Origin: Phaeosaccion multiseriatum
Taxonomy: Eukaryota; Protista; Ochrophyta, other classes
DNA: 64,000 nt
Direction of reading: 5' to 3'
Assembly: GCA_965112735.1 (NCBI GenBank)
Contig: OZ218954.1
Coordinates: 2,604,001 to 2,668,000, forward strand
The notes under the pieces are model-generated. The model was not told the DNA's origin. It ran no database searches and was given only the letters and a program-made list of their open reading frames with translations. The translations under genes were made by a program, and so were the position numbers. Positions 1 through 64,000 of this stretch are shown here, one piece after another. Within the stretch, counting starts at the first letter, position 1, and the number at the start of each line of letters is the position of its first letter.

Positions 1-1588
1 GTGTGCGTAACGAGGTTGTAAGGCTGGAACGGACTGCTCGCCAGGAAGTCCTCGACGGCCAGGCACAGCTCCTTCATGACAGGAGGCACATGCGGACAGT
101 CTGTCGGCCTCCCAACTCTCAGGCAGCCGTCTTCGAAGGCACCCTGCCGAAACCCCACCACGGGTTTCCCTGAGCGAGAGGAGGGGGGTGCTTGTTGACG
201 CTGGGCAGGGCGGGCGAAAGAGAAATGTTGGGAACTCCTGAAGGGCTCACCTTGCTCGTCCTTGGCAATGCTAAACTCACACTTGTTCCGATACCCCTCT
301 TTCCTAAAGGAAAGCAAAGGTTATGCGTGTCAGTCTTCCTCGGCCTCGGATTGTAGATAAAAAAAAGGGTAACAAAAGTAGAAGGAGGCCTCACTTGGGG
401 GCCGCGAGAATGGGGTCCATTTGAAAGGCCAGCTCCTTGCCTCCACTTGCGGCCAGCCATTCCGGGATAGTCAGCGCCTTGATCTTATCCTCGCTCTGAA
501 AGCACATCAGTTGCAAAATAGAGGAATGGGCTCTAGTCTGGTTTCATCCCTGGCTCACAGTAAAAGGTTTCACCCACCAGTTTCTCCTTCGGCGCCGATT
601 TCTTTCGCTTAATCATTTCCTTCTTGATGAGATTTTGCATCTTGAGTAGGCTCTCGTTGAGCATTGCTTTCTCCTTCTGGGCCTTCAAGGGTTTTAGGCA
701 CGAGATACAGACATGAGAAGAAACAGAAGCACCTCTAGACCGTCCTTCCCCCCCCCCCTCGCTGTACTCACCAGCTGATCTTCATAGCTCATGTGAAACC
801 ATGGGCAAGTCTGACACAAGAAACGCACAGCAGTAGGTCATAAGAAACACTCAAGATCAACTTATTTCCGTGCGGGAGAGGAGCTTACCGCCTCCACGAC
901 GCCCTTGACCTCCCTGGGCTTCTTAGTCACGGCTCTGGGGTCGTCTTCATCGCTCCTTCCCCTTTTGGTCATGAGCATCAAAGCTTCCTCCCTTGTAGTG
1001 GGGCGGCCACTCCTAGTCACCTGGTTGTGCCAAGAGAGAAGGCTCAATACACGATATAGGCGGCCCTTGCCTCCCTCCTCCACGCACCGTTATAGGGCGC
1101 CCCTTGCACACCCACTTCTTCAGGAGCTGCAGCGCCTTGTCGGCCTCGTCTGTGTCCTTGAAGGTTAGGAGGGCCATGGACCGCTTCGGAATCTTCGTCA
1201 CCTTGTGCACAGAAAAGCCGAGCCCCTGCTGCGCCAAGCTGCGCTCTACGTCACGCCGCCCCAAGTACTTGTTGAAGCCGCAGGCCACAAGCTTGGGCCT
1301 CTCAGTATTGTCCACCCCGAGGGAAGCTCCCTCCATCTCTCCTAACCCTTCTGGCTCTTCCGTATTTGCGGCCGCGGCTGGAGCAGCCCCCACAGCGACG
1401 GAAGATCCCTCCCCAGATCCGGGTTCTTCCGGCTCTTCCGTATTTGCGGCCGCGGCTGGAGCACCCCCCACAGCGACGGAAGATCCCTCCCCAGATCCGG
1501 GTTCTTCTGCAACATCGCCCCCCGCTGGAGCAGCGGCAACAACATTGGCCCCCGTTGGAGCAGCGGCGGTAGTAGGAGAAGTATCCAT
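1..1588 (-). CDS. TRMT2A: tRNA (uracil-5-)-methyltransferase TRMT2A-like, 5' part of a multi-exon gene; 3' end lies outside the window
   Basis: RRM-like segment (LVACGFNKYLGRRDV...MALLTFKD), then spliced exons give CPWFHMSYEDQL and YRNKCEFSI, matching the TRMT2A 'PLWxxPYxEQL' and 'YRNKCEF' motifs. Start could also be the ATG at 1615 or 1669. Confidence 0.85.
1353..1507 (-). repeat. In-frame 78-bp tandem duplication (2 copies) in the TRMT2A N-terminus
   Basis: EEPGSGEGSSVAVG(G/A)APAAAANTEEP occurs twice; units start at 1353 and 1431 and are near identical. Confidence 0.95.
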
Positions 1589-1722
1589 ACTGCCCCTGGT
1601 GAGAATGGCGCCCATATAAGAGGGGGGAGAGAGAATGAAGGGGGTGCGGATTACAACTCGCCTACTCATCACAAATGGCTTCTCTCTCTCTCATTTTCTC
1701 TTCATAGATGGCACTTAATAAA

Positions 1723-1765
<43 letters not shown>

Positions 1766-2120
1766 ATGAAGCGCTTTTCCCCGCTGTTCGGGGAAAGCTG
1801 GAGGTGGAGGCAGAGAGGAAGAGGGTAGCACTATTCCACATGGGACCAGCCAGCGCGAGGGGGAGAGGCCGATGGAAATGAATAGGCTCGGTGGAGGCGA
1901 GGGGAGAGACAACCACCACCACAATCTCACCAGCAGCAGCAGCAGACGCGGACATGAGACATGCATTCATTTCCTGGTGCAGGCACGAAGTAATGAAGGT
2001 GGTGCAGGCACGAAGTAAGTCTATGGTCATTCTTCTCCTCCCGCTTGGTTGCGCGAAACGGCGGCATCTGGATGCGAGATGCGACGCTGATATACCCATG
2101 GGTCTCATCGCTCGACCCTG

Positions 2121-2330
2121 ACCTGCTACCTGCTACCTGCTACCGGCGGCGTCAGCGGGCCTACTACCTGCTACCGCCGCATCAACCGGCTTCGACCTGC
2201 TACCGGCCGGCGTCATCGCGTCAGTCGGCCTGCTCGGCCGGCTCCTGACATGCTTTCCTCTTTGGGGGGGTTGCTTCTGCATCAGCCGGCCTGCTGCCTG
2301 TCAGCCGGCCCGCAAGTAGCATGCTACCGA
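2121..2330. repeat. Degenerate array of (CTACCTG)n plus GCCGGCGTCAGCCGGC-like core; member of the dispersed GCCGGC family
   Basis: About three units such as acctgctacctgctacctgctaccggcggcgtcagcgggc, plus tcagccggcc at about 2282 and 2301 and the palindrome gtagcatgctac. Confidence 0.7.
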
Positions 2331-2776: not shown

Positions 2777-3928
2777 CTACACCATGTTGACTACGGCAGG
2801 CAGCTGCATCATCTCTCCCGTGCGCAGACTGACAATGTAGTAGTAAAAGAAGTCTCCCATGATAGCGATGTGCACAAACTGTGTCAGCAGCACGAAGGGC
2901 CCCACCATGGAGCTATTGGTTGCGCCTGTGGTGCGGTTTAGGGGTTGGGGGAGGGGGTGGATGTTAGGGGGGGTGAACAGACTGATTTTCCACCTCTCTG
3001 CGCCAAGAGAAGGGGAAGGCTCTTCTTACCTGAGAGTTCATGGTACGAGTAGGCCCAGAAGATCATGTCCAATACCCTGGAGAAGCCCAGGGCAAAGACG
3101 CTGTGCCCAATGAGCACCTCCACCACACCCTTGGCCTGCTTCTGGAACATGTACAGCTGGGGGACAATGGCACAGGACTCCAGGTACATGGACAGCGCCC
3201 ATGCCGTGTCGGTCACAAATTCGCGGTTCAGAGAAGGGTGCAAGATCAAGGCGAGGAGGAAGCACGGCACCACGAGCCACAAAATGCCGAGGTGGTGAGG
3301 AACATGAAGGACACCAAAGTTGTCGTAGTCTCGCTGGTAGGACCGAGCGTATTTCGTCTCAATGAGCAGTAGACAACTGAGGGCCAGCCCCAAGGATAGC
3401 CCCTCAGCAATGTGGTACACAAAATCGCCACTCTTGTCATATGGGAGGTAGCCCTCGTGCCGAAGAATCGAAGCGAGACGGAACATAAACACCAGCGAAT
3501 ACATTTGGAGCGTCTTCTTGCTCACGCCCTTGGCGTGCTTCTTCACAAACATCCTCACAAAGAGGACACTGAAGCCAAATGTCCGCGTAAAGGCAGCGAA
3601 GGTCATGAGGAAGGAAAAATCTCCGTCGCTGCAAAGCGTAAAGATGCTGCCCACAACGAGGAAGAACACGGCCCACAGCCCAATCGTCTTGTTCATCTTG
3701 CGGACCATCTCCAGCGTCCTGCAAGGCAAGAAAGCAGAATGGAGGAGGGCCGGGTCAAGTTAGACTTCCAGGACATAGGGGGGGCTATGTAGGTGAGTTT
3801 CGCAGGTGCTTGGCCGTTCAAGGAGCGTGTTCGCTACGTGCTCTTTGGCCTCGCCAGGAACACAACACCACTTACGGCCGTGGGGACGCCAAGTAGCGGG
3901 GGGACGTATTGGCGCTTGGGGAATTCAT
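2777..3928 (-). CDS. ERD2: ER lumen protein-retaining (KDEL) receptor family protein, 3 exons
   Basis: Motifs GVSKKTLQMYSLVFMFRL, SMYLESCAIVPQL and MGDFFYYY; multiple TM segments; GT-AG introns at about 3875-3720 and 3029-2926 restore the frame. Confidence 0.9.
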
Positions 3929-4300: not shown

Positions 4301-5479
4301 TCACGTTGCGTCTGCTGTTTGAAATTGCTGAAGGACTTGGCTGGCTCTGACATTGGTGGAAGACTGGACTACGCTAAAGAGGGACGTTTCGTCGGCCAAG
4401 GCTGCCTCCCCTCTCCAAGGCAAGTCTTGGGCAAACCACACGTTGTGCCCCATCAACGTGACCTCGTGCTGCGGCTCGTGAAGATGCTTGAACATTCGAA
4501 AGTGCCGCAGCGCTGAACGGTAGAGCGTATACTCACTCCACCAAAGCTGCTGCTGCTCCGGCTGCTGTTGCTGTCCCCAATTCGTAAGGAGCCACTCCAT
4601 GGCATTCTCTCCGTGCACCTCCCGTAACCTGGCCAGGACCAAGAAAGCCCCACACTGGCTGAGCACGGCCGGGGTCACACCGAACCCTCCTAATGTGCCC
4701 TGCGGCGCCATGCCCAAGACAGCCTCAGACGAAGCCCACCACGCCGAGTGCACTTCTCTGCTCTCGTCCACGAAAGTAGCCTTGTTTTCAGAGCTCAAGA
4801 AGTCAGATGTGGTCAGGTTCATCTTGGTGCAAACCACGTCTGCATCCAGGGTGACGTAGAACTCTGTTCGCACGACAGTCGATACGAGCAGTTTCAAAGC
4901 CATCTGCACTGCGTACCCTTCCCACACCAAAGAGGAAGTGTCGTCTTCGTGACGCCTTTGCTGCACGGGCAGCAGGGTTCTTTCTCGGACCACTCGGACT
5001 GGGAGTCGTTGTGTCTTGCAATCGCCTTCTTCACTGTGGAACAGCAGAAGCTGCTCAAAAACAGGAGCCTGTGCGTCAGGCACCACAACAATGAGCTCTT
5101 CGAATACGGCATTCTGTCCACCATTAGCGAAGCCTTCGCCTCGGGCAGACAGTGCGCGCTCCAGCGAATAGAGGAGAACAGCGGCGCGGTCCAAATCGTC
5201 CAACACCAACGTCAGCACTGCCGTCAGTTTCTGCACTGGTCGCACAGGAGCCGGTTCGAGCGCAGTAACCACGACTGGGATCGGTGCGCTGGAAGCCGTG
5301 ATGGTACCTCGTCCCTCGACGTCATCCGCGTCCATCAAGTGCGCCGTAAGCCATGCCTGCCCAACCTCCGCGATGGGAACGTAGACGGAAGATTGCTCGT
5401 CTGCCGAGAAGCATCCCGCAAGAGTCCCATTGACCCGTGCGCACACTCTGATCGGCAGCAGCAGCATAACGTAACCCAT
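4301..5479 (-). CDS. Putative GT-A fold nucleotide-diphospho-sugar transferase (DUF6492-like); long single exon, start uncertain
   Basis: 398-aa ORF with 'GYAVQMALKL...EFYVTLDADVV' (DxD motif), TPAVLS and WSEYTLY; hydrophobic N-terminus. Confidence 0.65.
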   Translation of the reverse strand: MGYVMLLLPIRVCARVNGTLAGCFSADEQSSVYVPIAEVGQAWLTAHLMDADDVEGRGTITASSAPIPVVVTALEPAPVRPVQKLTAVLTLVLDDLDRAAVLLYSLERALSARGEGFANGGQNAVFEELIVVVPDAQAPVFEQLLLFHSEEGDCKTQRLPVRVVRERTLLPVQQRRHEDDTSSLVWEGYAVQMALKLLVSTVVRTEFYVTLDADVVCTKMNLTTSDFLSSENKATFVDESREVHSAWWASSEAVLGMAPQGTLGGFGVTPAVLSQCGAFLVLARLREVHGENAMEWLLTNWGQQQQPEQQQLWWSEYTLYRSALRHFRMFKHLHEPQHEVTLMGHNVWFAQDLPWRGEAALADETSLFSVVQSSTNVRASQVLQQFQTADAT

Positions 5480-5839
5480 CGGTGGTAGCAGCAGCAAGAG
5501 CAGCAGCAGCAGTAGGAGTTTGTATCAACGGAGGGGGAGACAGGGGCAACACTTCTTTCACCCGTGGCCCTCTCTCACCTCTCACCTCTCTTCGCGTTTT
5601 GCACCGCCACTGTGAATGGCACAAGAGCACGAACTTCGGCAGCGTCATGGCCAAACACTTGCCAGGGTAACGGACTAATCACATTCACGGACAAGACATT
5701 CATCCCTACTTGAGCCCATCACAGGAGGGACGCACAACCGCTGTGTTGGGAGGCTAAACCCTTCTTATGGCAATGGCCCTGACCTAAACATTTTCTCCCC
5801 TCTCCTTTCCTGCTCTTCCTCTATCTCACTCTCTCTACG

Positions 5840-5886
<47 letters not shown>

Positions 5887-5929
5887 CTCTCTCAGGCCCT
5901 GGGTGATCGGCCCTGTGGGCAAAAGCAAG

Positions 5930-6499
5930 ATGCCGGGCACGTCCTCTGCTGATTCGACCTGCACGAACGAGTACTGCAATTATGGGTGGGGTGAGATCCT
6001 GACCCATTTGGATCCGTACGGATGGGCCAATATGGGGATAGGTTTTGCGCTTGGATTGTCCATTGTTGGCGCTGCTTGGGGCATTTTCCTGACGGGCAGC
6101 AGTATTGTCGGGGCGGCGGTGAAGGCGCCTCGTATCCGGAGTAAGAACCTGGTGAGCGTCATTTTTTGCGAGGCGACTGCAATTTACGGAGTCATCATGG
6201 CCATCATTCTTCTCAACAAGATCCAGGAGCCGAGCGATGACATGTCCAACTACGACTGGAGTCAAGCGTACTTTGCTGCTTATGCGCTCTTTATGGGCGG
6301 TTTAGGGGTGGGCCTCACAAATCTGGCCAGCGGTATTTCCGTGGGTGTGGCAGGGAGCAGCTGTGCTTTGGCAGACGGACAGGATGGGTCACTGTTCGTC
6401 AAGATTCTCATTGTGGAAATCTTTGCCTCTGCCTTGGGAATTTTTGGCATCATTGTGGGCATCATTCAGAGTAACTCGGCGCAGTTTCCGGAGGCGTAA
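5930..6499 (+). CDS. ATP6V0B: V-type ATPase 21 kDa proteolipid subunit c''
   Basis: GAAWGIFLTGSSIVGAAVKAPRIRSKNLVSVIFCEATAIYG and LFVKILIVEIFASALGIFG are hallmark VMA16/ATP6V0B motifs. Confidence 0.97.
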   Translation: MPGTSSADSTCTNEYCNYGWGEILTHLDPYGWANMGIGFALGLSIVGAAWGIFLTGSSIVGAAVKAPRIRSKNLVSVIFCEATAIYGVIMAIILLNKIQEPSDDMSNYDWSQAYFAAYALFMGGLGVGLTNLASGISVGVAGSSCALADGQDGSLFVKILIVEIFASALGIFGIIVGIIQSNSAQFPEA

Positions 6500-6542
6500 A
6501 AAGCTCTCTTTCCTTCCTCTGTACAGTACATTACTAACAGCT

Positions 6543-8600
6543 CTATTGCAGAGTAGCAGCGGCATGGGAGGCTTTGGGTGCCGCGGGGGACATGAGATAG
6601 TCCGAGTATTTGAATCGCAGGTGAGCCCACAGCAATGCGAATACACCAGCCACTCCGGACACGACCACGCCTCCGGTGGTCCGATGTTGTGATGGCGCAA
6701 AGGTTATCCAGCCTGTCAGTCCCATCACCACTAGAAAGAAGGTGACGCCCCATCGGAAGTAGGAAAAGGACTTGTGCCACTCCGAGTCACCCCTGACGCG
6801 GTGTTGATTCCGAACCTCGTCCTCCCGATGGGACTTGTACAAGAGAATGTTGCCAAAGGTGGCCGTCAACATGGCAATCAGCGAGCAACCAACCTGAGTA
6901 GAGAGAGCGCAAGAAGAACCAGTACGTAAGAGGCAGGAGGGCAAACCACGTGCAAGCGTGCCAGCTTGGAACATCGCCACAAGAGCGTACCGTCAAAGAC
7001 GTGGCCAGCCCGTAAAGAATGACAATGGAAAGCTCCAGATCCTTGGGGATTTGCACCTCCACCATGGCCACCATAGCAAATCCGGCTATGAGGGCAGATA
7101 GGCTCGACACTTGCTGAAACTCCGCGCCCCGAACATCGACTTTTCGTCTTTCGTTGTCCTGTCTCCTCCACTGCATCTGCACCTCCATGTGAGAAGCCTC
7201 TTTCTGCATGGCGACTTCCTCCTTTTCAAACAGCTGCAGCTCCCGCTGGCGCCATGCCATGTCCTCTAGGCGGCATTTTTGGTTCCACGTCAGCTCAGAG
7301 ACCTATGAAAGAGCAAAGAGCAAAGAGAGACGGGGGGGAGGAGTAGAAGGATGAAGAAGAGGAGGAGAGTTGTAGGAAGAGGAGGAGGAGGGGGGGTAGG
7401 AGAAAGGGGAGGAGGACGAGGAGCAGCAGCAGCAGGAGGAGGAGGAAGAAGGATTGGAAGTGGTCCATTGAAAGAGGAGGAAGAGGAGGAGGAGGAGGAG
7501 GAGGAGGAGGAGGAGGAGGAGGAGGAGGGAGAGGAGGAGGAGGAGGAGGGATTGGAAGTGGTGGAGGAGGAGGAGAAGGAGGAGGAGGAGGAGGAGGAAG
7601 AGGAGGAGAAGGAGGAAGAGGAGGAGGAGAAGCGGGAGGAGCATTGGGGGTGGGGGACTGGAGGAGGAGGAGGAGGAGGCTAAGGAAGAGGAGGAGGAGG
7701 AGGAGGAGGAGGAGGAGGAGCAGAAGGAGGAGGAGGAGGAGGAGGAGGAGGAGGAGAAGGAGGAGAAGCAGGAGAAGCAGGAGGAGGAGGAGGAGGAGGA
7801 GGAGGAGGAGGAGGAGGAAGGTGAGGGGGAGGAAGAGGGTAAAGAGGAGGAGGAGGGAGGAAGGGGAGGAGGAGGAGGGAGGAAGGGGAGGAGGAGGAGG
7901 AGGAGGAGGAGGAGGAGGAGGAGGAGGGGGAGAGAAGGAGGATTGATAGTGGGGGATTGGAGGATTGGGTGTGGGGGATTGAAGGAGGGGGAGGAGGGGT
8001 AGGAGGAGCAGAGGAGGATTGGTAGTGGGTGGTTGGAGGATATGGTGTGTGTGGGATTGAAGAAGAAGAAGAAGAAGAAGAAGAAGAAGAAGAAGGAGGA
8101 GGAGGAGGAGGAGGAGGAGGAGGAGGAGGAGGAGGAGGAGGAGGAGGAGGAGGAGGAGGAGGAGGAGGAGGAGGAGGAGGAGGAGGAGGAGGAGGAGGAG
8201 GAGGAGGAGGAGGAGGAGGAGGAGGAGGAGGAGGAGGAGGAGGAGGAGGAGGAGGAGGAGGAGGAGGAGGAGGAGGAGGAGGAGGAGGAGGAGGAGGAGG
8301 AGGAGGAGGAGGAGGAGGAGGAGGAGGAGGAGGAGGAGGAGGAGGAGGAGGAGGAGGAGGAGGAGGAGGAGGAGGAGGAGGAGGAGGAGGAGGAGGAGGA
8401 GGAGGAGGAGGAGGAGGAGGAGGAGGAGGAGGAGGAGGAGGAGGAGGAGGAGGAGAAGAAGAAGAAGAAGAAGAAGGAGAAGGACACAGCAACAGAGGAT
8501 AAAAAGGAGGTGGGGACTTCCTTTGTAACACTCGATAGTAGTGGGGAAGTGAAGGGCGGCTTACCTGAGTGCCTGTCCCAATGGCGCTCAAGAACTCCAT
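6543..8600 (-). CDS. ORAI: Orai-family (CRAC) calcium channel, 3 exons (8600-8565, 7302-6991, 6893-6543)
   Basis: TM1 SALIAGFAMVAMVEVQ is nearly identical to Orai1 SALLSGFAMVAMVEVQ (E106 filter); four TM segments; phase-0 GT-AG introns join the exons in frame. Confidence 0.9.
7330..8480 (+). repeat. Polypurine tract: degenerate (GGA)n, then perfect (GGA)120 at 8095-8454 flanked by (GAA)n; fills Orai intron 1
   Basis: Directly visible simple repeat between the predicted donor (8564) and acceptor (7303). Confidence 0.97.
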
Positions 8601-8816: not shown

Positions 8817-10751
8817 ATGAAGCCACGACGCAAGAAGGTGGCCGAGGGCAAGGGTGAGGAGGGAAAGATGGGCGAGGAGGGCAAGGGCAAGGGTGCGGGC
8901 AAGGGTGGGACCGGCAAGCCCTCGCCAGCGCTCGTCTCTGATGCTCGCTTCGCGGCCATCCACAGCGACGCAACCTTCGGGTCGACGAGGAAGCAAGATC
9001 GGCGAGTGAAGCTAGACAAGAGATTTGGTCACGTCTTGACAGATGAGCGCTTCAGTGTATCGGGGGGGAAAGTGGACAAGTACGGCCGTGATCTGAGGGG
9101 GGCGGGGTCGGAAGGGAAGCAACGCCAGAAGGAGGACCTTCGAGAATTTTACAGCGTGGAAGAAGATGAGCCAGAGGAGACAGCAGATGACGATAGGGAA
9201 GAGAGTAGACAAGACTACCTCACCCGTCTCTCGCGGGGTGAGGTGAGTGCGGAGGGGTCCTCTTCGTCTTCCTCCGACTCGGAAGAGAGCGAGGATGATG
9301 GTGTTGGTGGGGGAGGGGGGGAGGAGGAGGAGGAAGAGGTGCCGCTCGGGGAGGCGACTACACGGGTGGCCCTGTTGAACTGCGACTGGGAGCATCTGAA
9401 GGCTGCTGATCTGATGGTTCTTGGCAACTCCTTTTGTCCCGCGACGCAACCCATCAAGCAAGTGTCCATCTACTGGTCCGACTATGGCTTGGAAAGGTCT
9501 GCAGAGGAGGATCGTTTCGGGCCTGTGGGTATTTTTGATGGCCGCAAAGCCTCAGACAAGGGTGGAGAAGGGGAAGCTCAAAGTGAGACGCAGGATGAAG
9601 TGGGGGAAGTCCGCGAGGGGCATGTCGTGGCGAGAAAGGGCCCGGGTATCGTCATGGAGGCTTCTTCATCGATGGACGGTTTTGACGCGGAAAAGCTGCG
9701 CGCGTACGAGCTACAAAAGGCCAAGTACTGCTTTGCTGTGGTGGATTGTCTGACCCTTGATGCAGCAGAGGTACTGTATAAGGAACTGGATGGGATGGAG
9801 TTTGAAAGGAGCTCTGTAGCCCTGGACCTGCGGTTCATCCCGAATGACGTGACCTTTACCGGGCGAAAACTGAAGGACTCGTGCAAGGCCATTCCTTCGA
9901 ATTATGAGCCCTCCCAATTCATCTGCAAGGCTCTGCAGCACACCAAAGTCGAGTGCACTTGGGATGAGGCGGCGGATGATCGCACCTCCCTCCTTACTCA
10001 GCATCACAGGTGGGCAGAGGTGGACGAAGACGCATTCCAAAGCTACCTGGCGAGCTCTTCGTCGTCGTCAGGAGAAGAATCGGAAGACGAGCGATCTGGC
10101 AAGCAGAAGGATGCAGGGCGTATGCGAAGGCTGCTGCTTGGGGATGATGTGGAGGAGGAGGAGGAGGACGAGGAGGAGGAGGAGGAGGAGGAGATGTTGC
10201 CCACAGCAGGAGCAGCAGCGGCCGGCCCAGCACACACAGCAGATGATGGAGACAAGGTTGTTTCTGCGGTCGTGCATAGCGAGGACAAGAAGCGGAATAC
10301 CAAGGAGGGAGGCCGGAAGAGTAGAAAGAGCAAGCAAAAAGAAGCTCTCGCGAAATCGGTAGAGTCGGATAGTGACGAGGATACTCGTGACTACGATATG
10401 CGGGGCCTGGCTAGACAAGACAAAATGAAAGGAAAGAAGCTCAAGGGCAAGAGAAAGATGAAGGAGGAGAAGCGGGGAAAGGTCGCGGGGCAGAACTTTC
10501 AGGTGGATGTGGGCGACGAACGCTTTGCGGCCATGCTGGAAGGCAAGGAGGGTTTCGGAGTTGATCGCACTCACAAAGCCTTCAAGGAGACGTCAGGAAT
10601 GCAGGACTTGCTCACGGAGAAAAGAAGGAGGAGGAAGCGTGCGCGGGCAGAGGTGTCGAAGGACGAAACCACCACCGGCGCAGCATCATCGGGGTCATCA
10701 TCGGCTCTGAATCTCCTTGTGAAGAAGCTCAACTCTCAAAACAAAGCATGA
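8817..10751 (+). CDS. ESF1: Pre-rRNA processing protein ESF1
   Basis: DARFAAIHSDATF, VDKYGR, TRVALLNCDWEHLKAADL, KLRAYEL, DGMEFERS, LDLRFIP and C-terminal DERF (NUC153-like) motifs; intronless. Confidence 0.95.
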   Translation: MKPRRKKVAEGKGEEGKMGEEGKGKGAGKGGTGKPSPALVSDARFAAIHSDATFGSTRKQDRRVKLDKRFGHVLTDERFSVSGGKVDKYGRDLRGAGSEGKQRQKEDLREFYSVEEDEPEETADDDREESRQDYLTRLSRGEVSAEGSSSSSSDSEESEDDGVGGGGGEEEEEEVPLGEATTRVALLNCDWEHLKAADLMVLGNSFCPATQPIKQVSIYWSDYGLERSAEEDRFGPVGIFDGRKASDKGGEGEAQSETQDEVGEVREGHVVARKGPGIVMEASSSMDGFDAEKLRAYELQKAKYCFAVVDCLTLDAAEVLYKELDGMEFERSSVALDLRFIPNDVTFTGRKLKDSCKAIPSNYEPSQFICKALQHTKVECTWDEAADDRTSLLTQHHRWAEVDEDAFQSYLASSSSSSGEESEDERSGKQKDAGRMRRLLLGDDVEEEEEDEEEEEEEEMLPTAGAAAAGPAHTADDGDKVVSAVVHSEDKKRNTKEGGRKSRKSKQKEALAKSVESDSDEDTRDYDMRGLARQDKMKGKKLKGKRKMKEEKRGKVAGQNFQVDVGDERFAAMLEGKEGFGVDRTHKAFKETSGMQDLLTEKRRRRKRARAEVSKDETTTGAASSGSSSALNLLVKKLNSQNKA

Positions 10752-10821
10752 GATTGTACAGCAGGCTATCCCTTTATTTTTTTATTATTAACACCCCCGC
10801 TCTACCTATTCAATTCTGTTC

Positions 10822-50751: not shown

Positions 50752-50786
<35 letters not shown>

Positions 50787-52888: not shown

Positions 52889-54236
52889 GGGAGGGAGGGA
52901 GGGAGGGAGGGAGGGAGGGAGGGAGGGAGGGAGGGAGGGAGGGAGGGAGGGAGGGAGGGAGGGAGGGAGGGAGGGAGGGAGGGAGGGAGGGAGGGAGGGA
53001 GGGAGGGAGGGAGGGAGGGAGGGAGGGAGGGAGGGAGGGAGGGAGGGAGGGAGGGAGGGAGGGAGGGAGGGAGGGAGGGAGGGAGGGAGGGAGGGAGGGA
53101 GGGAGGGAGGGAGGGAGGGAGGGAGGGAGGGAGGGAGGGAGGGAGGGAGGGAGGGAGGGAGGGAGGGAGGGAGGGAGGGAGGGAGGGAGGGAGGGAGGGA
53201 GGGAGGGAGGGAGGGAGGGAGGGAGGGAGGGAGGGAGGGAGGGAGGGAGGGAGGGAGGGAGGGAGGGAGGGAGGGAGGGAGGGAGGGAGGGAGGGAGGGA
53301 GGGAGGGAGGGAGGGAGGGAGGGAGGGAGGGAGGGAGGGAGGGAGGGAGGGAGGGAGGGAGGGAGGGAGGGAGGGAGGGAGGGAGGGAGGGAGGGAGGGA
53401 GGGAGGGAGGGAGGGAGGGAGGGAGGGAGGGAGGGAGGGAGGGAGGGAGGGAGGGAGGGAGGGAGGGAGGGAGGGAGGGAGGGAGGGAGGGAGGGAGGGA
53501 GGGAGGGAGGGAGGGAGGGAGGGAGGGAGGGAGGGAGGGAGGGAGGGAGGGAGGGAGGGAGGGAGGGAGGGAGGGAGGGAGGGAGGGAGGGAGGGAGGGA
53601 GGGAGGGAGGGAGGGAGGGAGGGAGGGAGGGAGGGAGGGAGGGAGGGAGGGAGGGAGGGAGGGAGGGAGGGAGGGAGGGAGGGAGGGAGGGAGGGAGGGA
53701 GGGAGGGAGGGAGGGAGGGAGGGAGGGAGGGAGGGAGGGAGGGAGGGAGGGAGGGAGGGAGGGAGGGAGGGAGGGAGGGAGGGAGGGAGGGAGGGAGGGA
53801 GGGAGGGAGGGAGGGAGGGAGGGAGGGAGGGAGGGAGGGAGGGAGGGAGGGAGGGAGGGAGGGAGGGAGGGAGGGAGGGAGGGAGGGAGGGAGGGAGGGA
53901 GGGAGGGAGGGAGGGAGGGAGGGAGGGAGGGAGGGAGGGAGGGAGGGAGGGAGGGAGGGAGGGAGGGAGGGAGGGAGGGAGGGAGGGAGGGAGGGAGGGA
54001 GGGAGGGAGGGAGGGAGGGAGGGAGGGAGGGAGGGAGGGAGGGAGGGAGGGAGGGAGGGAGGGAGGGAGGGAGGGAGGGAGGGAGGGAGGGAGGGAGGGA
54101 GGGAGGGAGGGAGGGAGGGAGGGAGGGAGGGAGGGAGGGAGGGAGGGAGGGAGGGAGGGAGGGAGGGAGGGAGGGAGGGAGGGAGGGAGGGAGGGAGGGA
54201 GGGAGGGAGGGAGGGAGGGAGGGAGGGAGGGAGGGA
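52889..54236 (+). repeat. Perfect (GGGA)n tract, 1348 bp (337 units)
   Basis: Directly visible; no interruptions seen. Confidence 0.98.
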
Positions 54237-54754: not shown

Positions 54755-55925
54755 ATGTCCAGCAAGAGGAAAGAGGCGGAGCCCCAGAGTCACAAAAACC
54801 GGAAGAGGAAAAGGCAGCGGCATGAAAAGAAGGAGTCTCGCCAGCAGGACTCGCAGCTGAAGGAGCCTCGCCAGCAGGAGGGAAAGCAGCAGAAGGGGCT
54901 TCGCCAGCATCCGACGGAGCCTCGTCAGGAGCAGCAGCAGCTGTCCCCCTTTTCGCTTTCAGCTGCTTCGTCCTATTCCAGACCGCAAAAAGGAATGTCT
55001 AAACTGCAGGAGAAGATGAGAAGGAAGCTGGAGGGCGGGCAGTTTCGTATGATCAACGAGCGCCTGTACACGTCGTCCAGCAGAGAGTCCGTGGAGGTGT
55101 TCAAGAAAGAACCCCAGCTGTTTGATGTGGTGCGTGTGAATCATCTGGTGGGTGTCCACGCTGTCCTCCTTGATTAATGTGTGTCTCTACCCCGCCCACC
55201 ATGCAGTATCATCGTGGCTTCCGGGAGCAAGTGGGCAAGTGGCCCGTGCATCCGCTGGATGTAATTATTGAATGGCTGCGCCGGCGTCCAAAAGCAGTAA
55301 TAGCGGACTTCGGATGTGGAGAAGCGAGGCTGGCGGCGTCGATAAAAAACAAGGTAACGGTAATGAGCATCACCTCTTAACCCTCCTAAAAGACTGATAG
55401 AAACAACACGCTGTTCCCACCACAGTGCCACTCCTTCGACCTGTGCTCTCCGAACGAGCTCGTCACAGCGTGCGACATGGCGAACGTGCCCCTCCCGGAC
55501 GGAGTCGTGGACGTGGCGGTGTTCTGCTTGTCTCTCATGGGGACGAATATGGCCGACTTTTTGCGCGAGGCGTTTAGAGTCCTGAAAGTCGGGGGGACTG
55601 TAAAGGTAAGGACGGGGGCAGAAAGGCCACAAACTAGTCCGCAGTACGAACCAAGGAAATGATGAGGACGACGCAATGACGACACCCACTCCCTCATGTC
55701 CAGGTGGCGGAGGTTAGGAGCCGCTTCGAAGGAGACAGTCCCGAGAGCACTTTGGAGCGCTTCTTGGAGTTGATGCAGACTCTGGGCTTTCGGCAGGTCC
55801 AAGTAGACAGGAAGAACAGAATGTTTGTCATGATGGAGTTTGTCAAGACTGCGCACAAGTTACCACCCGTGGGGAAAGGTGACCTGACCTTCTCCGCAAA
55901 GGCATGCACCTATAAAAAGAGATAA
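54755..55925 (+). CDS. RRP8: Ribosomal RNA-processing protein 8 (rRNA m1A methyltransferase), 4 exons
   Basis: [71 protein letters not shown]. Confidence 0.97.
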
Positions 55926-55944: not shown

Positions 55945-56763
55945 TCAGGCGCTAAGTTTTTCTGATGTGTGTGGGGCCACGGGGAGTCCAAATTCGTCCG
56001 TAGCTACCGCCGATTGACTGGGAGCGGCAGGCACGCCTGACGGTTCCAGCGGCAAGGTGGTGGGCTGCAGATATGCCGGAGCCTCGTCCTCTCCCAGCTC
56101 CTCTAGACCCTCTAATTCGTCGTCTAGGCCCGCCAGCTCTGCCTCCAGGTCATCCTCGTCGAGGTCGTCCGGTGTGGCGTAGGATTGGCTCAAAATCTCG
56201 TTGACTGCGAGTGAGGGAGTGAGTGGGTACGTCGTGAGTGAGAGAGTATACATAGGGAAGGGGAGAAGGTCAAGTCCCCCGCCATAAATAACTTGCACAA
56301 CCTCTGGGCGCCAAGTCAAAAAGCAGCACCTACCTTCATTCATGTCTTCCATCATGTCCGCCAAGTCGAACGCTACATCTTCCACCTCGTTGATATTGAT
56401 CTTCTTGGTCTCCACCTTGAGCTGCTTGTTGGCCGCCTTCATGGCTGCCACTGTGGTTTGCGTGTCTTTGATTGAGTCGATAGCGAAACTCGTTTGCTCA
56501 ACGTTAAACTGCTGTCCCTGCATCTGGTCTCTCTGCTGCTCGTACATCTTTTTCCGCTTCAGCGCCTCCATGGCTCGTCTCTTGATGTTATTCGCGGCCG
56601 CTCCCTTCGTCTTCTTCAGCGCGTTCTTGTACTTGATCAGCTCCAAATCCAGGGTCCTGATTTTTGCGTCGATCGCCTTCACCCTCTCGTCAATCCTTCC
56701 TCCCGCTTCACCGAGAGTTGGCGCCGGACCCTCCACCTTCTTTGCTCCAAAAATCCTCTTCAT
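55945..56763 (-). CDS. CHMP5: ESCRT-III charged multivesicular body protein 5 (Vps60), 2 exons
   Basis: MKRIFG, LKRKKMYEQQRD, FNVEQ, DTQTTVAAMK, SYATPDDLDEDDLEAEL, DEFGLP. Confidence 0.95.
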   Translation of the reverse strand: MKRIFGAKKVEGPAPTLGEAGGRIDERVKAIDAKIRTLDLELIKYKNALKKTKGAAANNIKRRAMEALKRKKMYEQQRDQMQGQQFNVEQTSFAIDSIKDTQTTVAAMKAANKQLKVETKKININEVEDVAFDLADMMEDMNEGRCCFLTWRPEVVQVIYGGGLDLLPFPMYTLSLTTYPLTPSLAVNEILSQSYATPDDLDEDDLEAELAGLDDELEGLEELGEDEAPAYLQPTTLPLEPSGVPAAPSQSAVATDEFGLPVAPHTSEKLSA

Positions 56764-57005: not shown

Positions 57006-58166
57006 ATGAAGTTCTTCCTCCTTCAAGCGGCCTTGTGCCTCTCCCTTGCTCAATGCTTCTCTCCCTCGCTTGCGCCTAAAGGCTGTGGGTTCAGTGCGCG
57101 AGGTCGAGGAGTTGCAGCCGCTCCAGCAGCAGTCGGGCTTGCTGCAGGTGCAGGCAATTTGGCGCGAGGATGGCCCACCTCCACAACGACTCTTAAGATG
57201 GCGGCAGAGAAGTTTGATACCATAGTCATCCCACCGGATTTCAAACTTGGTGCGGGATTCATTTTGGGGGGGGCTGCTGTCGCTGGAGGGCTGCACAACA
57301 CTGGGGTGGGCTTGCCTCTGCTCGTCATCGGCGCGTTCCTGACCCTTCAGGTGCAGTAGCCTTTCTGAACGTCCTGCGGTGCTGTACTTTGTGGAGTCAG
57401 GTGCACCAGTTGGGGCCCACGCGCTCCTTTCCTATCTGCAGTGGGGGCACAAAACGGGAAGGGAGGGAGTTTTCCATGATCCTGGGGCAAAACAGTGTAG
57501 TTTCCGCTGTTTGGGTTTCGGTTCGGGGTCGTGGCTGCTTACCGGTACCCTCATTGCTACAATTGCTACAGCACTAAGCTATCGCTTCGGGCGGGAAATA
57601 ACTCCCCAAGCTTCCCCGTGGGCCAACTCGCTCATTGCCCTTCCCTCGCAGGCAACCAGAGTGCGCTTCGAGTTTGATGATACGAGTATGGAGGTGAAGC
57701 TCGGGGGAGGAAACGCGGATGGAGAACTTCAAGACAGCGGGGAGAACTTTGCTGTGGGAGGCGCCAACCGCTGGCGGTATGACACATTCACCAAGTGGCG
57801 GGTGAGTAAGGTCTGGTGCCAACATTTTCCCGCGGAAAAGCCAGCTCACTGCGTGTCGATTGTCTCACTCTCATATATATGTTTAGGTGCTACCCTTCCG
57901 GGCTCTGCCCATTCTGGTCTACTTTTCAGAGGTACGATCTATATATATATATATGTATGTATAGCCGGGTCTTTGGAATACATTCAGCACGCACAACCTC
58001 CCCGAAAATAATGCCTCGCTCCTGCCTCTCTGCGTGCTCCCAACACAAACATGACCAGACGCAAACGGCTCCACAGGGCCAGCCTCACTTTTTCCCGTTC
58101 ATCATGGACCCAGGTCTCTTGATAAAGACACTGGAGGAGCGAGTGCCTAAAAGTGCCAGCGACTAG
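57006..58166 (+). CDS. Plastid-targeted DUF3119-family membrane protein, multi-exon
   Basis: Signal peptide ending AQC-FSP; FLTLQATRVRFEFDD, ENFAVGGANRW, PILVYF.ETQT, HFFP. Confidence 0.85.
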
Positions 58167-58275
58167 GTTCAAGACGGAAGGGGACAGGAGGGGAGAGTTC
58201 CCCACATTGTTAGATCATCTTAGGTATATAATCGCAGGCCTATTGAATTGTACAGCACCAACCCGCCTCGCAAGT

Positions 58276-58895
58276 CTATTGAATTGTACAGCACCCCCCG
58301 CCCCCCCCTTCCGCTCCTCTCGTCGTCCCCACTCGCTTGTCCACCGCACCCCCGTCGTCCTGGGAAGCCGAAGTACTTTGTGCGGGTCTCACGCTACAGT
58401 TGAATGGCGTAGGGCACGTCTTCAAGATGGGTATCTGATCAAGTGAAATGAATGTGTGTGTTCAACGCGATTCTGTGGTGGACTTTCCTCTTGATTCCAG
58501 GACTTACCTTTGCCTCCTCCAATGTCAGAGAGTCTTTCAAACACTCGGTGCCCATGCAAATGAGCCTCAGATGGGAGAGGTCCTGGGCTGGCGCAACACC
58601 TGAGGGACGCGGTGCAGCGAAAACAAGGCATAAGCAAGAAGTCGCTGGCGGTGGCTCGTCTTTGTTCCGCTTCTCCACCTCGTGGGTCTCACCTTCTGGC
58701 CAACTGGAGCAAAGCCTTTGCTTGAGCGCGCTGACTGTTTCACTTCTGTCTACATCATCGAATTCCAGAGTCACCCCTTCATAGTTCGCTGTATTTCATG
58801 GACACAGAGCGAGACAAAGGGGACATAAGATGGCTTCTTCTCCCGCTGGTTGCCCCTCCAGAGCGGACTTACCGAAAACAAACTTTACTTTCATC
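58276..58895 (-). CDS. UBL3: Membrane-anchored ubiquitin-fold protein (UBL3/MUB-like), 4 exons, C-terminal CCTIQ CAAX box
   Basis: MKVKFVF...TVSALKQRLCSSWP...LRLICMG..LKD; last exon reads ...GGGGGCCTIQ*. Confidence 0.82.
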
Positions 58896-59171
58896 GATTG
58901 GTGCCACAACTGCAGCTCCTGCTCTGGGCCCGAGCGAGCATCAGTAGCAGCACACTCCTTAGGAAGGGGGGGTGTTTTGCGGCGGTGGGTGGATCTCGAG
59001 GAAGGAGGCGCCCGCCCCGTCGTCGTCGCCAAAATTGATTACCAACTCGGCAATTTGTTACTTCATTTCTAGTCTTCGATTGTTCCCCGCGGGCCTGTTG
59101 CCCTGGGCCCGCTAGTTGCGCGCTGTCGGCTCTTACCGCGCTTCTCTGTCTCACGGGTGCTGACCCGAGAA

Positions 59172-61139
59172 ATGTTTTCCTCGCCGTATGGGTCAGGGAT
59201 TCCAGTGAACCCATACCAAGCTGCAGCAGCGGGAACAAGCAGCAACCATTTTAGCAGTGGCAGCTCTAGCAGGCGGAAGTGGCAAGGACGGATTGCTCTT
59301 TGCCTTGTCGTGTTCGCTGGTGTCCTTGTGCTTAAGCTGGGGGAGCAGTTTTTGTATAGGGACTTTCGCAGTGCTGGCGAACAAGAGTCCTTCGTAACGC
59401 CGAAGAATGGGGGGGGGGAACAACTCAAGCCAGCTTTTGGTGTGGTGGCGGATCTGCCCTCCATGCCACGCTCATCGGATGACGTGCATGTGATATTTTC
59501 CACCGACTGCTCGCCATATCAAGACTATCAGTCCACCTTGCTTTTCCACTCCGCCGAACTCGTGGGGCAGAGCGGCCCAGTCACACGCATCGCGAGTGGC
59601 TGCTCGGAGGAGGATGAGGCCGCGCTCAGAGAAAAGATGAGTGCAATGCCGGAGAATTTCCGGGTGCACTTTACACCTGACTTTAGCTCGGACCCGTTGA
59701 CTGGGGCAACGTACTACTTTTACAACAAGCCGAACGGCGTGGCCCACTTCTTGAGCAATGCGAGTCCCCCGGTCTCGGAAGCTGTGATTGCCCTCGTTGA
59801 CCCAGACCAAATCCTTCTCCGGAAGATCGAAGCTTCAGTTGGCAATGATATGGGCTGGTGAGTGCTTGTTGTTGTTCTCCTTGCAAGGAAAGTGAATAGC
59901 TGAGTCTCCAACCTTCGTTCTGACGTGAGTTCGCTTCCTCTCTCGCCTTTCGGCAGGAAATCGACCTACTCCGCCGAGTTCTTGACCTCGGCAGGCGACT
60001 GGGTGAGGGAGGGCTTTCCGACGGGGGCTCCGTACGGTCTCGGTGGTAAATGGACGACGTGGGCCGATTTGAGCAGCATCTTGGACGCCGTGCCGGAGAC
60101 TCGGGGGGGGGGCAGCCCAGCCCTGACCTACTCCATTCCAGAAGCGACACAGTTTTTCGCCGTGGGCCCTCCCTACCTGATGCATTCCAGGGACTGGGTC
60201 CGGCTGATCAAACTATGGGTGGCTCTTGCGCCGTACGTCAACCAGGGGCACCCAGGCATCTTGGCGGAGATGTACGGCTTTTGCGTCGCAGCGGTACGTA
60301 CAGCCAGGTTTGTCGTCTCTGGTCCCAAAGACGAAGACAGGCACAGTACTGATTGATTCCCGTCCACGCCGCCCTCCGCCACACCACAGGCACATTTGAG
60401 ACTGGAGCACCGCATCGGGGACACCTACATGATCAGCCAGCCCGGAGCGCCGGACGAGGGGTGGCGTCTCATTGAGCCCATGGGACGAGATGTTTGCCCT
60501 GTCGACATTGCGACGCAGTCGAAGCCAAATTTTCCAGTGGTCTTCCATTACTGCCAGGTATGTGGGCTTACTTCAATACACAGCTCTGGCCACCGGCAAG
60601 CAACAGAACTGAGCACAATATATTCTCCTCCTACTCGTACTCCCCCCCCCCCCCCGCCAAAACAGAGCTGGCGCGTAGCCGCGTTTTCCTTTTTGAAGCG
60701 GCACGAGAGTCTGCACGCTTTCTTCAGCTGCTCGGCCCCCGCCTGGGAGGAGCCGCCAAGTAACATCTTGGATCTTCCCATGGCCGCGGCACGGGTGCAC
60801 CCCAAGCACCGGGGGGGCGGGCCACTGGAGGTGGTGACCGACGAAGAGCGCAAGCTCCAGCAGGTGACTGAGATTATGCGTTTCCTCTCACCAGAGACTT
60901 AGCATGCACACCAACCAACTCTTTCCTCCCCCCCATCTCCTTCCTCCGAACAGGCGTTTGGCACGTGTCTAATGCTCAGGTACCTGAACAGCGCACAACG
61001 CGCCTATCAGGAGCGATTCTGTGGTGGCAACCGCCAGGCGGAGAACGGCTCAAAAAGATTCTCGGACCTGATTCCGAGCGATCTCGACGAGGAGCGGCTG
61101 ACTAGGCTGTACAAAGAAGCGGGGCTGTCGTACAGTTAA
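59172..61139 (+). CDS. Peptidyl-serine alpha-galactosyltransferase / hydroxyproline O-arabinosyltransferase-like type II membrane glycosyltransferase, multi-exon
   Basis: TM anchor; HVIFSTDCSPYQDYQ, VTRIASGC, YNKPNG, VDPDQ (DxD), GPPYLMH, LAEMYG, HYCQ. Confidence 0.85.
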
Positions 61140-61283
61140 AGCATCTCATACATGTACAGCGTCTTGTGTGATTCCCCCCCGTTGTTTTAGGATGCGGCGG
61201 CCGCTGACCACCCGGCCTAGAACTTTCACAATCCTCGTTTACTGTGCAGGCACCACCGCAGTCGGCCCTGGAAGAGGTTATCA

Positions 61284-61477
61284 GATTACTGATTACGGCC
61301 GGCGCAGCCGGCCTGATTACTGATTATGGCGCCAGCCGGGCCTGATTACTGATTATGGCCGGCGCCAGCCGGGTCTGATTACTGATTATGACCGGCGCCA
61401 GCCGGCCTGATTACTGATTATGACGGGCGCTAGCCGGCCTGATTACTGATTATTGGCGCCAGAGATTATGGTCGGCG
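61284..61477. repeat. Minisatellite of about 6 units of 29-33 bp (GATTACTGATTATGGCCGGCGCCAGCCGGCCT); GCCGGC-core family
   Basis: Units start at 61284, 61315, 61344, 61377, 61409 and 61441. Confidence 0.93.
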
Positions 61478-61620
61478 AATACTGTAACCTCCTCCAGGGC
61501 TCCAGGGCCGACCGCAGCTGGGCGAAGGAATGGAAAGGCGACTAAAAGTAAAGTTCCAAATCATTCGCCCCACAGTTTCGGAAATACAACACACATGGCA
61601 AGCCCCCAGCGGCAGCCGCC

Positions 61621-64000
61621 ATGATAAATAATCACCGCCAGGCGCGCCTGGATGCTCTCAAGCGTGTAGACTCTCGAATAGAGGCAATCGCAGCCTTTCA
61701 TGGCCCGGAGAGGGATAGCGGAGGGAGGAAGCGAAGCTCCAGCAGCGTGATTGTTTCGGCCACAGACGATGGGCCCCTCCCCAGCGCCCAGGAGAGTGGT
61801 GAAAGAAGGCACAGCGGCGCGGACATGGGCGACTCCGATCTGGGTAGTCAGTCCGAACAGCGGCAGCAGGACTTGGAAAAGACCATGTGGATTGTGCGGT
61901 ACTATCTTAAGCTGGGAAATTTCTGCCAGGTACGTGGAGATGAGGTGGTGCGCATTCCCCACCCCAAACAGGGTGGAGCAAGGTGTAACACACGAAAATC
62001 TTAATCCTTTGCTGTACACAGATGATTCTCGACGGGCGGGTGTTCAGTTCCCTGATAATTCTGTGCATCCTCTTGGCAGGGGTCTTGGTTGGCTTGCAGA
62101 CCTACCCCGATATTGGGGCCGCCCCTGTGATCACTGAGCTGGACAATATGATTCTCGGTATGTTTACCTTGGAGCTAGTGCTCAAGGTTATCTCCTTCGG
62201 GCTCAAGCCGTGGCAGTTCTTGCTGGGCTCGCAAAAGGCCTGGAACTTGTTTGACCTCTTTATTGTCATCATGTGCTTTGCCTACAATGTGGAGAATGGA
62301 TCGGTCGCTTTTCTCCGCCTACTGCGCCTAATGAGAGTTGCAAAGCTTGTGCGGGAGGTGCCCCAACTTCAGATGATCGTCATGGGCCTGGTCGGGGGCA
62401 TGCGGAGCATCCTCTACATTGTCATTCTCCTTTGCTTGGTGTTCTATATATACGCCATTGCGGGTATTTACTACTTTCGAGGTGAGCGGCCAGAGAGAGA
62501 GAGAGAGAGAGAGAGATATAGAGAGAGAGAGAGATAGAGAGGATCCAAAATATCCACTCATATCTCTCCTCTACCTTTACGTGCCTGCAGAGAACGACCC
62601 GTTCCACTTCGACACACTCCCGGTTGCCATGGTCACTCTCTTTCGGGCGGCAACGCTGGAGCAGTGGGCGGAAGTGATGTACATCAATATGTGGGGTTGC
62701 GACGTCTACACAGGGGACCTCTACATCAACAGTAACAGCTCTGCTGCAGCCACAAGTCCAGACATGCTCCTGTGTGATGCCCCTGCGGCCAACGCGTGGC
62801 TAAGTATCTTCTTTTGGATCACGTTCATTGTCATCTGCGCTCTTGTAATGCTGAGCCTCTTCGTCGGAGCCGTCACCATGTCCATGACCGAGGTGCGTGC
62901 GTTTGTGCTCTTCTCTGGCGCACCGTAAGCACCCCCCCCCCCCCCCCCTTAGCCACATCCCGTCGCTCCTCTCCCTTGCCTCCCGCAGAGTATGGCCATT
63001 ATGAAGAGCGAGAGGGAAGAGGCGAAGAGGGAGCGGCGTCTGAGAAAGGCGCAGCAGGAGGCTCAGGCCGCGCATGAGGAGAGGCGGCGGATCTTGAATG
63101 ACGTCGGTGAGTGACCGAGAAGGGAAAGAGCCAAAAACTTCTTTGGCGTGTCAGCAGACCTAATATATTATTATAATTACCAACCCCTACCGCACAGCTC
63201 GAGACATCGCAGCGGGCACGCACGACAGCACGCTCCAAGGCGCCATGAGCATGGAGATGACCGGTAAGGGCATGTGTGCAGCGGATCTAGACCGAAAGCT
63301 TGCTTCTTTTCCTCTTGCTGAATGGGAGTCTCCTCGTCTTTGTTTCTCCTCTTCTCAGCGCAACTCAAGTACAAAGCGCAGGCGGCCAAGGCGGCAGTGG
63401 ACAAGGAGGAGCTCACCAAGGACCAGCGGAAGATGCGGGTGCGAGGGCCTCAGGAGCAGAAACAATGGGCTTTGTCTGTCTTTCCCCACTCAAGTCAATG
63501 GTGTTGTTCTGTGTGTTTCTACCGGTCCTCAGACTTTGTTGGAGCGAGCATGGGGTGGACACGAACTATATCATGAAGACGAAGACATGAGCCACAAGGG
63601 CTGGAGGCAAAAGTACGCACGCCTGGCGGACTTCTGTGCGAATGTAAGTCTCTTCGGTTGGTGCGTGGAGCCTCGCTCTGTCTGAGCATCTCACCACTCG
63701 CGCCTCCCCCCCCCCCCTCCCCAACAAACCCCTCCACTGGCACTCGCAGTTGACAGAGAAGAGCGCGTTCAACAACATGATCACAGGATGCATTGTTATT
63801 GCGGCCATCACAGTAGGTGCGGCGACGTACGAGAGTGTAGACAACAGCTACTTTCTCCGGGCCTTCATGTGGGTGCTCGAGCACGTGATTCTGTGGGTCT
63901 TTACGCTGGAGATGGTCGTGCGCATCATTGCCGAGGAGTTCACGCCATGGTGAGTGTGCAGCTGGCGAGCTCGAGCCCGAGCCTGCCTCACTAGGGACGG
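61621..64000 (+). CDS. Multi-domain voltage-gated cation (Na/Ca) channel, 5' part; truncated by the window end
   Basis: Domain I: WNLFD, S4 FLRLLRLMRVAKLVR, pore FDTLPVAMVTLFRAATLEQW and S6. A linker follows, then S1-S2 of a second domain (FNNMITGCI...FTLEMVVRI). Confidence 0.9.

Follow-up and report, generated by a model that had tools for sequence, protein, structure and literature searches.

Introduction

Gene orientation in eukaryotic genomes is usually near random. The subject of this work is the marked alternation of gene strands in a stretch of 64,000 nt (below, the window) from the alga Phaeosaccion multiseriatum (contig OZ218954.1, positions 2,604,001-2,668,000 of the forward strand; assembly of 67.1 Mb in 22 contigs), for which the closest described systems are found among brown algae and their sister taxa. 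In Ectocarpus and related brown algae, opposite-strand pairs are put at up to ~60% of neighbours (Cock et al., 2010, as cited in 10.1101/2024.02.19.579948). The excess extends over the Fucophycideae/Dictyotales/Ishigeales clade and exceeds 60% in the Ectocarpales, and divergent spacers are shorter than tandem ones (10.1101/2024.02.19.579948). In Ectocarpus, 61.7% of the genes flanking spacers adjacent to a transcription start site (TSS) belong to divergent pairs, median spacers measure 409 nt for divergent and 2293 nt for tandem neighbours, and divergent spacers below ~600 bp hold one common nucleosome-depleted region, with histone-mark peaks likewise in common, yet both genes are independently regulated (Bourdareau et al., 2021, PMC7784034). 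Chordaria has 9328 opposite versus 6387 same-strand pairs (59%) and Pleurocladia 7364 versus 4722 (61%); among the sister taxa, Tribonema minus has 10666 versus 6947 (60.6%), with shorter opposite-strand spacers, whereas Chrysoparadoxa (49.8%), Schizocladia (42.9%), Heterosigma (48.9%) and Phaeothamnion (47.2%) are without bias, and the trait is therefore patchy (Phaeoexplorer Table S1). In compact genomes such as that of yeast, bidirectional promoters and bidirectional termination zones have been described (10.1101/2022.11.02.514956). Given the excess published for relatives, this type of organisation is already known in the lineage.

The window resembles the brown-algal genomes in belonging to the same broad lineage (its V-ATPase subunit c is ~80% identical), in its excess of opposite-strand neighbours, in having divergent spacers shorter than tandem ones and in pairing unrelated genes, and it shares with Tribonema minus both the excess and the shorter opposite-strand spacers. 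It differs from brown algae in that 85% of its junctions switch strand, against published genome-wide values of ~56-61%, and in that its spacers are far shorter; a comparison sample from another contig (C1) gave ~55%. The genome is also smaller (67 Mb versus ~200 Mb or more in brown algae). The likeness to yeast would lie in one nucleosome-free region serving two diverging genes and one short zone terminating two converging ones. Yeast gene order is ~50% opposite-strand overall. What stands out here are the very short spacers and the local strength of the alternation, which would be new, the phenomenon itself having been described in brown algae.

Results

Strand alternation in the window

Re-annotation of the window yielded 35 genes, numbered below in their order along the forward strand, and 29 of the 34 junctions between neighbours switch strand, which confirms the near-perfect alternation claimed in a preliminary description of this DNA. 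The same five co-oriented pairs were recovered (RRM protein and KDEL receptor, KDEL receptor and DUF6492 protein, OST48 and RPL26, ZNF593 and RRP8, HPAT-like protein and ion channel), as was the strictly alternating run of 17 genes from RPL26 to ZNF593; a second strict run comprises the 10 genes from DUF6492 to OST48. The binomial probability of at least 29 switches in 34 junctions at a rate of 0.5 is 1.9e-5. When gene 20 and the aldo/keto reductase gene (AKR) are each counted as two genes, 29 of 36 junctions switch (p = 1.6e-4), and when all nine genes without an assigned family are dropped, 17 of 25 switches are left; because the alternation persists under both recounts, the observation is real. 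The window had been selected for its alternation among 1,094 windows; the probability per window of at least 29 switches in 34 would be 1.4e-3 if the true rate were 0.6 and 7.7e-3 if it were 0.65. As had also been described, the paired genes are functionally unrelated, for example DUF6492 and V-ATPase c, NDUFA5 and GNAT, or RanGAP and a membrane protein.

The gene list was rebuilt independently, leaving the earlier coordinates unused, from a gene finder, Pfam scans of single exons and inspection by eye. The gene finder, a two-strand hidden-Markov model (GHMM) with start, stop, three-periodic coding states and phased introns, was self-trained on the window and on 200 kb of contig C1, and the splice features that it learned were a GT[AG]AGT donor, a CAG acceptor and a median intron of ~129 nt. 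Its raw output tends to fragment genes and was used only to draft gene models and to score strands (in nats). Spliced models were searched one exon open reading frame (ORF) at a time, and joined proteins were only read by eye and used in one local tblastn search. Taken as a gene count, the raw GHMM output (21-27 switches for 31-52 models, 53-70%, varying with the gene-start penalty) was rejected, as it splits genes and misses small ones; draft fragments of OST48, RCC1, VPS9, the Gfo/Idh/MocA oxidoreductase and RPL26 were merged into single genes by Pfam domain order.

Pfam matches above the curated cut-off were obtained for 23 of the 35 genes, always on the strand favoured by independent coding statistics, and weak matches for three more (STN1, DUF3119, ZNF593). 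The nine genes without a family were called from long ORFs and coding statistics; the called strand is favoured by 14 nats or more in eight of them, and the ninth, the Sfi1-like gene 23, was called instead from ORFs of 553 and 455 codons. Sequence searches against PDB with two of them (genes 8 and 26) gave no match. Two small genes needed for 29/34 had been missed by the GHMM: a GNAT gene (+) at 46837-47579, between the co-oriented NDUFA5 and gene 26, and a ubiquitin-like gene (-) at ~58300-58900, between the DUF3119 and HPAT-like genes; both are above the Pfam cut-off. A look for hidden opposite-strand genes in the window's five tandem spacers revealed none.

Spacers and sequence signals between genes

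All spacers in the window were measured from coding sequence (CDS) to CDS. The 15 divergent junctions (ATG to ATG) range from 92 to 1556 nt with a median of 434 nt, and eight of them are at most 241 nt long; the 14 convergent junctions (stop to stop) range from 7 to 605 nt with a median of 146 nt, nine being at most 170 nt; and the five tandem junctions range from 481 to 2940 nt with a median of 592 nt, none being shorter than 481 nt. All 17 junctions below 300 nt lie between opposite strands, and nearly every spacer is either the short 5' region of a diverging pair or the very short 3' zone of a converging pair. The 92-nt spacer separates the RanGAP and membrane-protein genes, and the spacer on the 5' side of OST48 measures 145 nt. 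Start codons lie well within 1 kb of each other in most head-to-head pairs, the ATG-to-ATG distance being below 700 nt in 12 of the 15 divergent pairs, and the TSSs of the close pairs must lie within these spacers. The shortest convergent spacers are those of GNAT/gene 26 (7 nt), RRP8/Snf7 (19 nt), V-ATPase c/Orai (43 nt) and ESF1/kinase (70 nt), and the stop-to-stop distances of at most 170 nt are too short for two separate 3' untranslated regions and terminators. From this layout we infer shared promoters and overlapping 3' ends in the window.

A motif search in the divergent spacers of the window revealed no enrichment beyond GA/GGA-rich simple sequence. Past the stop codons, TGTA[ACT] is concentrated within the first 0-50 nt (14 occurrences over 33 genes versus ~3 per 50-nt bin elsewhere), with a weaker peak in C1. 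The palindrome TGTACA, often as TTGTACAGCA, occurs six times in 2.9 kb of convergent zones versus 0.26 per kb in genes, an enrichment of ~8-fold; zones that carry it include 6500-6542, 10752-10821 and 58167-58299. TGTACA and TGTA[ACT] are candidates for a polyadenylation or termination signal that could be read from both strands.

Strand switches in a sample of another contig

The only unselected sample was a region of 200 kb from another contig (C1:3000001-3200000), chosen blindly. The raw pipeline output for this region contained 32-41 switches for 60-86 models, and after fragments had been merged by eye and with Pfam, 56 genes remained with ~30 switches in 55 junctions (54.5%, confidence interval 41-68%; p = 0.59 against 0.5). 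The switch rate of the window differs from that of C1 (Fisher p = 0.003). C1 is looser than the window, with ~3.6 kb per gene and with duplications and transposon copies; leaving out one arm of its inverted duplication gives 25 of 46 switches. Its co-oriented runs contain distinct genes, as Pfam confirms (calpain, EF-hand protein, GDPD, thioredoxin, IQ, RRM, PPR), and inspection of its long tandem gaps for opposite-strand ORFs gave none that was convincing. When window and C1 were pooled, junctions below 300 nt comprised 21 opposite and 3 tandem cases (Fisher p = 0.011).

According to the preliminary description, the genome is built from bidirectional-promoter units with shared convergent 3' zones. 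The layout expected of such units is borne out in the window, but with ~30/55 in C1 the statement about the genome is so far unsupported. The C1 rate of ~55% indeed falls inside the range of 50-60% that the preliminary description had itself set against a genome-wide extension, in a sample that is small and perhaps atypical.

The inverted segmental duplication in C1 (3009836-3031168 and 3087097-3108404) is 21.3 kb long and 96.7-98.4% identical, and its arms, ~56 kb apart, mirror each other in the order of the same ~9 genes, one of which is present in yet another, partial copy at ~C1:3085200-3086430. A predicted protein of 183 amino acids is encoded at C1:3012794-3013502 and C1:3104765-3105473; its second half copies the C-terminal tail of a DEAD-box helicase gene (C1:3081806-3084765), and the predicted gene is probably a fragment brought along with the duplication. 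A direct repeat of 3.7 kb (C1:3108944-3112615 and 3120455-3124128; 99.6% identity), each copy with a near-identical ORF of 887-888 codons, flanks a PPR-repeat gene and is probably a mobile element. Finally, within one model at C1:3157441-3162873 a D-3-phosphoglycerate dehydrogenase-like N-terminus is followed by a phosphoserine aminotransferase-like C-terminus (both recognised by eye), two steps of serine synthesis, encoded either by adjacent co-oriented genes or by a fusion.

Genes of the window

The window is nuclear DNA with intron-bearing genes, a GC content of ~56% and a compact arrangement of ~1.8 kb per gene; a scan for tRNA genes and Rfam families found none. The best database matches of its ESF1 protein are only ~44% identical and all stramenopile sequences, and its V-ATPase subunit c is ~80% identical to brown-algal, Chrysoparadoxa and Phaeothamnion proteins and ~73% to those of Heterosigma and diatoms. 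These identities therefore place the alga in the brown-alga/xanthophyte group, with no close sequenced relative in the collections searched, and the window is a tightly packed series of conserved housekeeping genes from such a stramenopile.

The first two genes form the left-hand tandem series with gene 3. Gene 1 (1-1336, -) runs off the start of the window and encodes an RRM-like protein whose N-terminus resembles TRMT2A by eye (GHMM model, 36.6 nats; no Pfam match); a short tandem repeat (78 nt x 2.1 copies, 1348-1507) lies just upstream of its start codon, in the spacer towards gene 2 (2777-3708, -), which encodes a KDEL (endoplasmic reticulum lumen protein retaining) receptor (PF00810, E=7.8e-34).

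The run of 10 genes begins with gene 3 (4301-5479, -), a single exon for a DUF6492 protein (PF20102, E=4.4e-40), followed by the V-ATPase proteolipid subunit c (gene 4, 5647-6499, +; PF00137, E=9.3e-28) and by an Orai-like channel subunit in two exons (gene 5, 6543-7260, -; PF07856 in both exon ORFs). ESF1, a pre-rRNA processing protein, is encoded by gene 6 (8817-10751, +; PF25121, E=8.4e-40, and PF08159, with homologues), and a CK1-like kinase with a C-terminal FHA domain by gene 7 (10822-12522, -; PF00498 with 27.3 bits, weak PF00069, 48.5 nats). Gene 8 (13203-14788, +) is a family-less GHMM model of five exons (54.4 nats; no Pfam or PDB match). Spt4 (gene 9, 15394-15947, -) was recognised on ORF 15397-15624 (PF06093, E=7.7e-17) and ClpP protease (gene 10, 17283-18256, +) in two exons (PF00574, E=8.1e-57 and 6.1e-16). 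An ORF of 643 codons accounts for the Arg/Ser/Gly-rich protein of gene 11 (18712-21144, -; 109.5 nats, no Pfam match), and the run closes with the oligosaccharyltransferase subunit OST48 (gene 12, 21290-23275, +; PF03345 and PF23358 in three exon ORFs).

The run of 17 genes starts with ribosomal protein L26 (RPL26; gene 13, 23850-24537, +; PF16906, E=6.6e-13, and KOW), whose tiny first exon was not located. It continues with a RanGAP-like LRR protein (gene 14, 24698-26456, -; PF13516 with 33 bits, 88.6 nats), a family-less multi-pass membrane protein (gene 15, 26549-27439, +; GHMM model, 19.3 nats) and a Gfo/Idh/MocA oxidoreductase resembling dihydrodiol dehydrogenase (DHDH; gene 16, 27559-29569, -; PF01408, E=6.2e-10, on ORF 29056-29325). 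Gene 17 (30695-31987, +) encodes a glycosyltransferase of family 25 (PF01755, 31.4 bits) with its 3' end at 31578 or 31987, gene 18 (31973-33800, -) an RCC1-repeat protein (PF00415/PF13540 in ORFs 32643-33392 and 33256-33819) and gene 19 (33977-36342, +) a VPS9-domain protein (PF02204, E=8.7e-16). The family-less gene 20 (unk20; 36513-38107, -; 30.3 and 49.7 nats) is one gene or possibly two co-oriented ones, its parts being merged when the gene-start probability is set low. The last exons of AKR (gene 21, 38349-41012, +; PF00248, 37.5 bits) lie beyond a gap filled with (CTCA)n, as detected by Tandem Repeats Finder (TRF); the array comprises 176 copies (39950-40659).

A secreted or transmembrane-anchored protein without a family follows (gene 22, 41143-42556, -; GHMM model, 27.6 nats). 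Gene 23 (42785-45770, +), with overlapping ORFs within 42764-45767, encodes an Arg/Trp/Leu-rich Trp/Arg-repeat protein with a recurring L-x-x-W-R/K motif, reminiscent by eye of the centrin-binding repeats of Sfi1; it has no Pfam match, and its codon use is so atypical that the GHMM ignored it. The N-terminal exon of the complex I subunit NDUFA5 (gene 24, 46024-46618, -; PF04716, 39.3 bits) was read by eye, as was exon 1 of the two-exon GNAT acetyltransferase (gene 25; PF00583 with 25.1 bits on ORF 47289-47576, cut-off 20.7). Gene 26 (47587-48072, -), which may start at 48411, is family-less (36.9 nats; no Pfam or PDB match), gene 27 (48612-49734, +) encodes an STN1-like OB-fold protein (PF09170 with 25.3 bits, just under the cut-off; 34.3 nats) and gene 28 (50113-50874, -) a RING-finger protein (PF13639, 39.7 bits). 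At the end of the run, gene 29 (51412-51814, +) encodes a ZNF593/Bud20-like zinc finger (weak C2H2, 19.5 nats), whose sole PDB matches are ZNF593 (E=0.06) and Bud20 (E=0.098).

To its right lie an RRP8-type methyltransferase (gene 30, 54755-55925, +; PF05148, 43.3 bits), a Snf7/ESCRT-III protein (gene 31, 55945-56763, -; PF03357, E=3e-29) and a DUF3119-like membrane protein (gene 32, 57198-58166, +; PF11317 with 22.1 bits, under the cut-off; 5 nats). The ends of the ubiquitin-like (Rad60-SLD_2) gene 33 are approximate (PF13881 with 29 bits on ORF 58442-58795, cut-off 23). Gene 34 (59463-61139, +) encodes a glycosyltransferase of HPAT/SGT type by eye (GHMM model, 41.9 nats; no Pfam match), and gene 35 (61621-64000, +), a multi-domain voltage-gated ion channel (PF00520 in three exon ORFs), runs off the end of the window; a short tandem repeat (32 nt x 5.4 copies, 61284-61453) lies in the spacer ahead of it.

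Long purine-rich simple repeats occupy the two divergent spacers of greatest length: (GGA)n with 374 copies (7337-8484) fills the Orai/ESF1 spacer and (AG)n with 314 copies (16036-16652) the Spt4/ClpP spacer. The tandem spacer that separates ZNF593 from RRP8 holds an (AGGG)n array of 337 copies with 100% matches (1.35 kb, 52888-54236), G-rich on the plus strand, open in all six frames and with a strong potential for G-quadruplex formation. These three tracts are open in several frames and are not genes.

Discussion

The spacing pattern of the window, together with the looser C1 sample at 30/55, points to an alternation that is local and linked to compaction. We consider it probable that the window represents the strong end of the brown-algal opposite-strand bias and not a whole-genome rule. 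As to the evolutionary cause of the alternation, we infer that spacing is the likely one: a tandem junction would need room for both a terminator and a promoter with an insulating gap, and in the window it never falls below ~480 nt, while a head-to-head junction could use one common nucleosome-free promoter region and a tail-to-tail junction would allow abutting or overlapping 3' ends. As tandem neighbours would need room and opposite-strand neighbours could share, an alternating order might persist, or might permit squeezing, where the genome is compacted.

Several points weigh against this explanation. The two regions examined amount to 264 kb of 67 Mb, and the window was picked for looking extreme. 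C1 on its own has four opposite and three tandem junctions below 300 nt, with no opposite-strand enrichment. Nine genes of the window were called from ORF length and coding statistics only, and gene ends are the CDS ends of an improvised gene finder and not mapped TSSs or polyadenylation sites. Motif occurrences are few, and where a convergent zone is short, a palindrome within it counts for both genes.

The alternative that survives best is one moderate genome-wide bias (~55-62%, as in Ectocarpales or Tribonema) of which the window would be the most extreme of ~1,000 samples, without any local regime of its own. At rates of 0.6-0.65, one to eight such windows are expected among 1,094, and the unselected C1 with its confidence interval is compatible with such rates; at the C1 point estimate of 0.55, however, only ~0.2 such windows are expected, and the window differs from C1 not only in switch rate but also in gene density and spacer length, which indicates real heterogeneity. 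We regard a uniform bias as unlikely, though it deserves serious attention, and prefer compaction-linked alternation.

It is distinctly less likely that nearly all gene space consists of alternating units with bidirectional promoters and shared terminators, at a switch rate of at least 75%, with C1 as an atypical, rearranged exception. Such a rule would agree with the 29/34 of the window, and C1 does carry a 21-kb inverted duplication and repeated transposon-like ORFs, but the C1 rate hardly changes when one duplication arm is removed, its co-oriented genes are distinct and confirmed by Pfam, its long tandem gaps revealed no hidden genes on the other strand, and published relatives do not pass ~61%.

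Very little probability attaches to an artefact of gene calling, in which the alternation would stem from genes assigned to the wrong strand, from co-oriented genes run together or from small genes that do not exist. The GHMM by itself gave fewer switches, two needed genes were added by hand and nine genes are family-less; yet 23 genes, both hand-added ones among them, exceed the Pfam cut-off on the called strand, 17/25 remains without the family-less genes, and the GHMM deficit came from splitting OST48, RCC1, VPS9, AKR and DHDH, as seen from Pfam domain order. Just as implausible are co-regulation modules in which head-to-head partners are kept together for joint expression, an idea suggested by the eight divergent pairs with at most 241 nt from ATG to ATG, since the partners are functionally unrelated, the neighbours of ESF1 are not conserved on metagenomic contigs of distant relatives (contigs that are short, and on which no homologue of the window neighbours was found) and close divergent pairs of Ectocarpus are independently regulated (PMC7784034).

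A bolder version, in which the gene-dense fraction or the whole genome alternates at 80% or more and converging genes maybe share a palindromic 3'-end signal of the TGTACA type, appears doubtful at best. If true, such alternation would lie far above the maximum of ~61% recorded for relatives, and no other eukaryote would lend itself as clearly to studying the constraints that shared promoters and terminators place on gene order. In practice the value is modest and would lie in compact bidirectional promoters and terminators for algal engineering. With 85% alternation and spacers down to 7-92 nt, the window offers a natural test bed for how one promoter region may serve two genes, how a few dozen bases may suffice for converging transcripts to end and why tandem neighbours would need more room.

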